Assembly (NCBI GenBank): GCA_003427395.1
Contig: BFEA01000038.1
Location: forward strand, 230,466 to 294,465
Origin: Chara braunii
Taxonomy: Eukaryota > Plantae > Charophyceae
Direction of reading: 5' to 3'
DNA: 64,000 nucleotides
In this document: positions 12,631 to 14,759 of the stretch, in pieces
Numbering within the stretch: the stretch's first letter is position 1
Layout of the letters: the number at the start of each line of letters is the position of its first letter
Position numbers and translations under genes: made by a program
The notes under the pieces: model-generated
What the model was told of the DNA's origin: nothing
Databases searched by the model: none
What the model saw: the letters and a program-made list of their open reading frames with translations, nothing else

Positions 12631-14759
12631 NAAAAAAAACACAAATAATCCTAGTCCCTTCAGTAGCCATCCCATAACCTTTCGATGCGGAAAATCGGTA
12701 TACAAGACTAAGGATAATAAAAGATCCCAAAAAATGCAGAAATTGACCCAAGTAAAATAAACTTAGCTCAGAAAATGCAGGAATTGAAACTAACTCCTAT
12801 AGCTCTAGCACGTGGCGAGCATCTAAAACAAGTACCTATCAAACTGAAACTCAGACTAAGTAGTGATCTCACACAACCACATGCAAAGCCAAATTACAAT
12901 GGTAAATACTCTCACCAACCCCAAATCAACTTGGTCAAACAATAATTCGTAGTCTTTCAATGATTTATCCCTTATACTCAACTTACATAGGGGTAAAGCT
13001 AGACCATCCAATCTTATGGAAACATGTCTAGCTCAACCATTGAATATACACAAACACAAAACACTATTAATTTTTCTCTTCCTTGGGCATATGACTAGGA
13101 TGTCCAAACTAGTCGCCCTGAACTGTTTAAGTATTCAATTTATATATAATTGTCTGCCCTTAGTCTTTTAAGGTAACATATGACTGAACCGATCATTTTA
13201 GATCAAGGTTCAATATGTCCATTCTTACCTAAAATTTATTTTTAATTCATACTCTCTTTAGTTAATGATAAACTATAGTCAGACCATCCAATCTTATGCA
13301 AAAATGTCTGACAAGCCTGTTCAACCGAAAAATAATATAAGAATATAAACAAGTTTATCCATTTGGTTACAGCATGTGCGTGACTCCATACCAACCACCC
13401 AATCTCATGGGAACCTGTCTAGTCCTTCGCCTGAATTCCCCCCTCATAATAAAACAAGAAAGAGTCAAGGTCATCCAATCTTATGGAACATGACAAACTC
13501 TCTTTCATAAACTAATAAAACATAAGAAAACCCAAAGAAACAAGGCAACCAAGCTATCCAATCTTATGGAAAAATGCTTGGTCCCTTAACGTCAAACACA
13601 AGCAGCCCTCGAGTCAAAGCAACCAGACCACCCAATATTATGGGAACCCGACTGGTCCTTCAGACAATCAAAAATAAACATAGCACTCGACCCTCCAATC
13701 TTATGGAGATTCTCCCAGCCTTTGGTTGACCCAGTCAAACACAAGCAATACAACCTTCCTCCTATCTTTCCCCCCAGATGCAATCCCCTTTCACAATTTT
13801 CTTTCAATCAAACAACAAAACTGAAACCAACTTTACACAAACATTCCTTTATCAAGTCTGGTTTGTCCTGTCAAAATAGGAATGCGGACAATATACTCAG
13901 TCAACCATAGCAAGAAGTACAAATAAATGTTATGACTAGGTTTATAGATGGAAAGCAATGGTTACCTCTCAGTTCCCTGCCTCCATAACTCCTCCTGAGT
14001 TCCGGCAAAGCTCCCGCAATCGGTGGGCAGACTCCCCACAGAGTCTTGGTGCGGTCCTACAGGTTGTAATCCCGCCTGCCGCCTTCCTCTCTAAACAAGA
14101 TTCGACTTACAATAAGAAGGGCAAAAGGAGGGGTTTCAAACTCTCGAGATATAAGAGAGGGACAACTCAACTCCCAGGAGAGGGCCTTGTAATCTTCCGT
14201 CGCCCGAGGGCCCCGCAATGGCAGCCAAAGCGCAAATCAGCTTGGTCAACAAAAGTCGAACTGCTGAATAGCTCCCCCTGACGACCCTCCAAATCGCGGC
14301 GGTGACCCCCTTGCAGAGTTTGCCTTCTACCTTCAAGTCCCATGCCGTTTTATATGACCAAACTATCGCCACACAACCTAGACCGGTTGTGTTCAAATAG
14401 CGCGCAACCCCACCTCTTCATGCTTTGTTCAAATACGATGTACGTAGCAAACGCAAGGGCAAAATGCCATGCAGTGCACAACGCTAGTAGCAAGGTCACA
14501 ACAGGTGCACAACGAAAAAACACAGTCGCATCCGACCCAAACCCGCAAGGCACAGGCCGGAAGTGCCTGGCCAAACCACGATAAGGTACCGTTTCGCACA
14601 GTAACTAAAACCATTTCAACAACAAGATCCTGGCAGCACCCTTGGTTGTCAGGGCAACGCAGCAGCCTCTAAGCCACAAGGCAATCTAAGCGGAGCAACA
14701 ACAACCAGCGTACGTGCAACCGTTAACCATATGGGCCACTATCGCGATCGGGCATGTCA
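12631..14759. mobile_element. Probable LTR-retrotransposon non-coding remnant (LTR/UTR) containing the hairpin array
   Basis: Right boundary ...gatcgggcatgtca reads TGACATGCCC on the minus strand (LTR-like terminus). Strong strand skew. A ~45-bp block at 12799-12843 is shared with 2308-2352, and CA-rich low-complexity text resembles 2860-3300. No gag/pol ORF seen. Confidence 0.4.

Follow-up and report, generated by a model that had tools for sequence, protein, structure and literature searches.

A row of covarying two-stem hairpins in a very abundant mobile repeat of Chara braunii

What keeps the stems of a row of hairpins paired when the stems differ in sequence from one hairpin to the next? 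This question is raised by a stretch of the genome of the charophyte Chara braunii (contig BFEA01000038.1, positions 230,466 to 294,465; these 64,000 nucleotides are the window analysed here, and all coordinates below count from its first letter). Between positions 12997 and 13712, the window holds eight two-stem hairpins with an ATCTTA-type hexaloop, all on the + strand. The array lies in non-coding sequence of a highly abundant mobile repeat of Chara, and we favour, with moderate confidence, the reading that it is a multivalent row of loop-specific docking sites on the RNA of this element.

Layout of the hairpins and covariation of their stems

The units have a common design, in which an outer stem of 7–8 bp is followed by an asymmetric internal loop (the 5′ side mostly CA, the 3′ side 3–5 nt long and starting with AA), an inner stem of 4–5 bp, and the hexaloop ATCTTA or a one-letter variant of it. 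When the whole window was searched for the 12-nt core CCAATCTTATGG with at most one mismatch, seven matches were found in the array (at 13008, 13288, 13399, 13475, 13558, 13632, and 13695, all on the + strand) and none outside it. ATCTTA-like hexaloops (at most one mismatch) closed by at least 4 bp occur seven times in the array versus three times in the other ~127 kb, both strands counted. The unit at 13278–13312, which has one inner-stem mismatch, is an eighth unit besides the seven matches of this loop search. From loop to loop, the units lie 184, 96, 111, 76, 83, 74, and 63 nt apart. The hairpins of the array are:

12997–13033 (+): U1; outer stem 8 bp; internal loop CA / AACAT; inner stem TCCA:TGGA; loop ATCTTA; fold z = −5.2
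13093–13114 (+): stem-only hairpin of 6 bp with a 10-nt loop; z = −2.7; doubtful, possibly a former unit without a core
13158–13173 (+): small hairpin CCTTA / GTCTTT / TAAGG; z = −2.2; doubtful unit, its loop off at two of six positions
13185–13212 (+): U1b; outer stem TGAACC:GGTTCA; inner stem GATC:GATC; loop ATTTTA in the window copy; no CCAAT; z = −4.4
13278–13312 (+): U2; outer stem 7 bp, GTCAGAC:GTCTGAC; inner stem with one C·C mismatch
13390–13424 (+): U3; inner stem CCCA:TGGG; loop ATCTCA in the window copy; 5′ outer arm decayed
13458–13506 (+): U4; inner stem TCCA:TGGA; shifted 4-bp stem GTCA:TGAC; extra 7-bp outer helix GAAAGAG:CTCTTTC; z = −4.1
13542–13587 (+): U5; outer stem ACCAAGC:GCTTGGT, in which two neighbouring pairs are swapped compared with the other units; AAGG:CCTT outside it; z = −4.0
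13622–13656 (+): U6; inner stem CCCA:TGGG; loop ATATTA; outer stem with six of seven pairs in the window copy
13689–13712 (+): U7; inner stem 5 bp, CTCCA:TGGAG; loop ATCTTA; outer stem largely lost

The original prediction, made from the letters alone, had counted about nine stem-loops. Each stem and loop position that it gave was recovered at the same coordinates, and eight of its units hold up. The hairpin with the loop GTCTTT (13158–13173) is doubtful as a unit, and the read pile-up of the repeat family described below lists no family-majority change in it towards ATCTTA.

The pairing of the stems was tested on a gapless alignment of seven units (12 pairs, 84 cells), all of which come from one copy and are related to each other. 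In this alignment, 75% of the cells are paired, versus 14–35% when the 3′ partner is slid by one to three columns. Eight of the 12 pairs have changed on both sides, and the observed number of doubly changed cells and the covariation score were reached by none of 500 shuffles. Measured against the common arm, as it is found in U6, the 5′ arm is altered at two positions in each of U1, U2, and U5, and the 3′ arm of the same unit shows precisely the two alterations that match these and is otherwise unchanged; by our own estimate, which assumes ~30% substitution per site, the chance of such a matched double change is ~0.002 per unit. All six outer-stem compensations, as well as the inner T-A to C-G change in U3 and U6, are transition pairs. 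This pattern is that of a route through a wobble pair, as expected of stepwise RNA-type compensation and not of block copying. Compared with dinucleotide shuffles, the fold of the whole array is also better (z = −4.4 on the + strand and −3.8 on the − strand). Taken one by one, U1, the unit at 13185, U2, U4, and U5 reach z-scores of −3.4 to −5.2, and U3, U6, and U7 in the window copy do not fold significantly better than shuffles.

The linkers between the units, of which the shortest has 28 and the longest 151 nt, are rich in A and poor in G (45% A and 11% G in the last five). Among 36 linker pairs, a single one shows clear similarity and nearly all others are unrelated, while the cores are ~90% identical or more. 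The pairing test and the linker comparison together bear out the claim that the stems change in a compensatory manner and that the loop is kept far beyond the linkers. A relict identity of 14 nt between linkers (13591–13604 and 13734–13747, z 6.9), together with the likeness of U1 to U2 (93% over 29 nt) and of U3 to U6 (85% over 40 nt), indicates that duplications of units and blocks built up the array. With linkers of such uneven length that carry traces of common descent, the repeat-spacer look that had first been ascribed to the array proved superficial. The array is also unlike a plain decayed tandem repeat of the satellite type, as the tandem-repeat search (TRF) reports no array and the linkers are so rarely similar, even though the units are related by descent. 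A CRISPR-like reading with spacers of foreign origin was ruled out, since the array stretch is itself high-copy and its linkers contain relict homology.

The high-copy repeat and its decayed copy

For copy numbers, four public runs of the same organism, as reads and as contigs, were mapped onto 12632–15900 (3,269 letters). Two features emerge:

12632–14260 (+): high-copy repeat segment with the array; left side cut by a gap, right end at ~14230–14266
13940–14260 (+): most abundant, conserved module, to the right of the array; depth 1e5 to 2e5

Contig word depth, when summed, lies between 2e3 and 2e5 over 12632–14266 and at ~7–80 in most bins of 14267–15900, where the single-copy level is ~7 and the exceptions to the right of the repeat are small repeats (15030–15138 and 15466–15683). 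At the right border, the depth drops from ~2e4 (14158–14266) to ~80 and then to ~7 (14267 onwards), and one single-copy contig begins at 14201. The left side of the repeat ends in an assembly gap (12427–12631). Over the array, the depth runs from a few thousand to ~18,000, and it reaches 1e5 to 2e5 in the flanking modules (12741–12849 and 13940–14157). Copies of the array stretch number in the hundreds to thousands. Either the array is the fast-changing part between conserved modules, or the flanking modules are common to other repeats as well. Joints in other copies connect 13762–13782 to 13958–13962.

A 44-nt piece of the left part of the repeat (12800–12843) recurs at 2309–2352 with 98% identity, where it forms part of another short tandem repeat with units that contain cgtggaatgatacgcgaccata. 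The bin with 12800–12843 has the second-highest depth of the examined stretch (1.8e5), pointing to a very widespread short module.

High copy number combined with a sharp boundary to unique DNA, as found here, is a mark of a long terminal repeat (LTR). Near the right end, a CA (14216–14217) is followed after one base by a stretch starting with TGG (14219–14233, + strand), and the two look like a candidate LTR end and primer-binding site. The only tRNA gene in the window, tRNA-Lys(UUU) at 29855–29929 (+), does not match the candidate primer-binding stretch, and the tRNA scan found no tRNA near the array. A TATA-like motif (13141–13149) and two AATAAA motifs (13673–13678 and 13922–13927) are compatible with a U3-R-U5 order on the + strand, but are too weak to carry weight. 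A 107-aa open reading frame (ORF) of the repeat is without relatives in the protein collection searched.

A covariance model made from seven units matches only those units in the window, and its other best matches there (E 0.13 or worse) are unrelated GC-rich palindromes. Among these weak matches are 36708–36734 and 37364–37395 (arms GGACCGGAC / GTCCGGTCC), which sit within an inverted repeat pair of their own (36539–36754 versus 37575–37344, 83%).

In the read pile-up, the family majority differs from the window copy at five places within units and has the canonical letter at four of them. The loop becomes ATCTTA in the unit at 13185 (U1b; 13197 T>C, 98.5% of depth) and in U3 (13406 C>T, 99% of depth). 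In U6, 13651 A>T (98% of depth) restores GTCTGGT and mends the single broken outer pair, giving seven of seven pairs, and in U5 the CA internal loop is restored by 13555 T>C (98% of depth). The fifth change, 13493 A>C, puts the short stem of U4 in another register, and its meaning is ambiguous. U1b, which has the inner stem GATC:GATC in place of TCCA:TGGA and lacks CCAAT, has kept full pairing and, in the family majority, the loop. In contigs of other copies, the units are kept and the linker between U5 and U6 can no longer be aligned. In further contigs, blocks of units are missing or repeated (one, for example, joins 13420 to 13670), showing that the number of units varies among copies.

The window copy is an essentially silent, mutated, and decaying relic. 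Of the family reads, those at least 99% alike to it number 2 of 2865 in RNA run X7 and 0 of 366 in RNA run X6, and the observed-to-expected CpG ratio is 0.28–0.35 in 13001–14000, across the array. The repair of its defects in the family majority, its silence, and the low CpG ratio together suggest that the structure is kept in master elements and decays neutrally after insertion. That the majority letters mend broken loops and pairs makes it possible to separate selection on the master element from post-insertion decay. Three findings, the compensatory stems, the conserved loop, and the repair of broken loop and stem positions in the family majority, make selection on a single-stranded structure, as the original prediction had proposed, the best reading of the array.

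The same data bear on the view that the array is a neutral by-product, a decayed tandem duplication of one ancestral palindromic unit in which recent unit-to-unit conversion and chance have left matched arms without any function. We consider this improbable. It draws on the shared descent of the units seen in U1 and U2, in U3 and U6, and in the relict linker identity, as well as on the three of eight units that fold no better than shuffles in the window copy and on a generic stem density that is not significant. However, U1, U2, U5, and U6 have arms that differ at two positions each and yet pair at 7–8 of 7–8 positions, and the linkers have lost nearly all similarity while the cores have not. 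Furthermore, purifying selection in a master lineage, with neutral decay after insertion, would leave a family majority that is more canonical than the window copy, as is seen at four of the five places.

Possible function, rival readings, and surroundings of the array

In an active element, each unit would fold in single-stranded nucleic acid, most likely the RNA of the element read on the + strand. The predicted hairpin consists of an outer stem of 7–8 bp of free sequence, a CA / AA-rich internal loop, a 4-bp inner stem, and the hexaloop AUCUUA. Eight to eleven such hairpins, with unstructured A-rich and G-poor linkers between them, would form a multivalent platform, and a protein that reads the loop and the internal loop, and not the sequence of the stem, could bind to it in several copies. 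A first guess for this partner is the Gag/nucleocapsid protein of the element, which may use the array for selective packaging; as a second guess, it may be an export or stabilisation factor.

Several observations weigh against docking sites on RNA. No RNA attributable to the window copy was seen. Family reads in poly(A) RNA run in both directions and roughly track the DNA copy number, and read-through or DNA carry-over may account for them (run X6 appears stranded, and run X7 has reads in both directions). The retroelement UTR, suggested as a setting in the original prediction, finds no confirmation in the window, which contains no second copy of the repeat and no second LTR; the window copy may be solo or truncated. 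There is also no gag-pol ORF or partner protein in the window and no Pfam match near the array. The covariation is drawn from seven to eight related units within one copy. The original prediction had named a similar hairpin density in dinucleotide-shuffled sequence as a result that would refute it, and for generic stems no excess over shuffles appeared: perfect stems of at least 6 bp number 7 versus 4.9 ± 2.1 in the shuffles. As generic stem density is thus not above shuffles, the signal is specific to hairpins centred on the conserved core. Finally, none of the 84 cells of the alignment is a G·U pair on the + strand, and 7 of the 21 unpaired cells are A·C, which would be G·U if the − strand were the folded one. 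This excess of A·C is about the chance level for an A/C-rich + strand. The lack of G·U on the + strand leaves either strand or a DNA-level process possible, and the per-unit z-scores, the A-rich linkers, and the order of CA and TGG lean slightly towards the + strand.

A DNA-level process is central to the main rival, which we regard as unlikely. It holds that the units are duplicated promoter or enhancer motifs with a core that contains a CCAAT box, the quasi-palindromic arms of which are kept matched by template switching in DNA replication or reverse transcription, so that no selection on the folded strand is needed. Template switching can create or repair stems in one step, making perfect stems with pairs fixed in one event, and could give matched arms without selection on each pair (PMC8794818). 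Such a process would fit the complete lack of G·U intermediates. Repeated protein-binding boxes are found in the LTR promoters of plant retrotransposons, for example the BII boxes of Tnt1 (PMC3316501). In the array, CCAAT is present in seven of the eight units. Moreover, the array is the variable part between two far more abundant conserved modules, and U3 regions (in the LTR sense, not the unit of that name) behave as such a variable part. Against this, CCAAT-box enhancer repeats of the NF-Y type would call for an intact CCAAT in every unit, and the one unit without it (13185–13212) keeps the family-majority ATCTTA loop on a different, fully paired inner stem. A reader of double-stranded DNA would meet unrelated arm sequences from unit to unit. 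Template switching also leaves unexplained why a constant loop and internal loop stand beside linkers that have diverged beyond recognition, and the compensations, all of them transition pairs, speak for stepwise, RNA-type change and not for block copying.

The size of the constant core, ~19–22 nt, suggests another alternative, in which the core is a repeated target or source of small RNAs, or the hairpins are single-stranded DNA sites for a recombinase or nuclease acting during replication of the element. The core is of small-RNA size, and the absence of G·U pairs is compatible with DNA hairpins, but of all readings weighed here this is the one we hold least probable. Stems of 7–8 bp plus 4 bp fall short of what Dicer-type processing requires, pairing takes up half of the core, and nothing complementary to it was found elsewhere in the window. 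The surroundings of the array are also free of HUH and recombinase genes.

Returning to docking sites on RNA, one may ask how far the reading extends beyond this locus. We put forward, tentatively, that rows of TAR-like two-stem hairpins in Chara retrotransposons could be an undescribed class of cis-element. The loop would give each family its own address for an RNA-binding protein encoded by the element or by the host, loops would differ between subfamilies, and the row would act as a multivalent ‘hairpin code’ for packaging or export. The claim that no described element resembles the array agrees with a search of 10000–18000 on both strands, in which no covariance model of Rfam 15 matched at E ≤ 1, and our literature search found nothing relevant on such hairpin arrays in retrotransposons. 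If the hairpins are docking sites, nature would have its own version of the engineered MS2/PP7 hairpin arrays, and plant-lineage retrotransposons a new kind of recognition signal, which could help to explain the thousands of copies of one family in a giant algal genome. Loop-specific, stem-independent RNA recognition, and its co-evolution between subfamilies, could then also be studied in a clean system.

Several other features of the window and of the core sequence were recorded. In a metagenome scan, a 19-nt core was found once in each of five contigs (soil or other; four with the same sequence) with no array or flanking stems, and these matches were taken as chance. Just left of the assembly gap, an inverted repeat pair of ~197 bp with 80% identity (9793–9988 / 12122–12317) surrounds a 2.1-kb AT-rich segment with long T runs and has short palindromes of the ACCCTTGTAAGGGT type near its inner ends; its appearance is that of a terminal-inverted-repeat element. 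To the right of the repeat, a ~33-nt piece in otherwise single-copy DNA (15075–15108, overlapping a 10-nt tandem repeat at 15090–15114) is abundant in RNA runs, with a depth of 675 in X5 and many reads in X6 and X7. The loose ends that flank it are sharp and consistent on both sides (agreement 0.9–0.97), indicating that an expressed RNA from elsewhere has just this piece in common. Farther away, on the − strand, lie an intron-free protein kinase ORF of 775 aa (38967–41294) and a 907-aa open frame (51984–54707) with bacterial-type extracellular solute-binding domains, SBP_bac_6 (1.5e-17) and SBP_bac_8, in a window that is otherwise eukaryotic.

Comparison with known systems

CRISPR arrays resemble the Chara array superficially in that hairpin-forming repeats alternate with dissimilar spacers. 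In contrast to their near-identical direct repeats of 23–50 nt with uniform unique spacers, the Chara array is constant only in a core of 12–22 nt, its arms differ, its spacers of 28–151 nt have traces of homology, and TRF finds no array. Nor is it a single prokaryotic locus, being itself a high-copy repeat of a eukaryotic genome, with a eukaryote-type kinase ORF in the window.

Another comparison is the insulator array of the Drosophila gypsy element, which lies in the 5′ untranslated region and is read as double-stranded DNA by the zinc-finger protein Su(Hw). There, too, about a dozen copies of a short conserved motif are separated by AT-rich spacers in a non-coding part of the element, in its case one of the Ty3/gypsy type, but the motifs of gypsy are without paired flanks, whereas the flanks in Chara covary as stems. 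In architecture, the single unit resembles HIV-1 TAR and the iron-responsive elements, in which a lower stem, a bulge or internal loop, and an upper stem of 4–5 bp present a hexaloop that is read by a protein. The fold predicted for the Chara units has the same plan, from a lower stem through an asymmetric bulge or internal loop to a short upper stem that ends in a 6-nt loop. They differ in the loop sequence, in having no Rfam match, and in their number, with 8–11 tandem copies versus one to three.

The repeated promoter boxes of plant LTRs, such as the BII boxes of Tnt1, are likewise short repeated motifs in a variable stretch, in their case that of an LTR (PMC3316501). Unlike the Chara units, one of which keeps its fold without CCAAT, they have no described hairpin or covariation. 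The nearest functional analogues are viral: several stem-loops with a common loop motif and variable stems act as packaging signals for the coat protein, as in the single-stranded RNA viruses MS2, satellite tobacco necrosis virus (STNV), and parechovirus and in the hepatitis B virus pregenome, where the stem-loops lie on one RNA and bind capsid protein in a multivalent and cooperative manner (PMC6281560, PMC5699041, PMC4751978). These signals are degenerate and scattered in coding sequence, whereas the Chara units are two-stem hairpins in a tight non-coding array and share no homology with them. Several stem-loops, a common loop motif, and variable stems are nevertheless all found in Chara. 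By analogy, the array would be of the same kind as the cis-acting, protein-recognised hairpin sets of retroelements and viruses.

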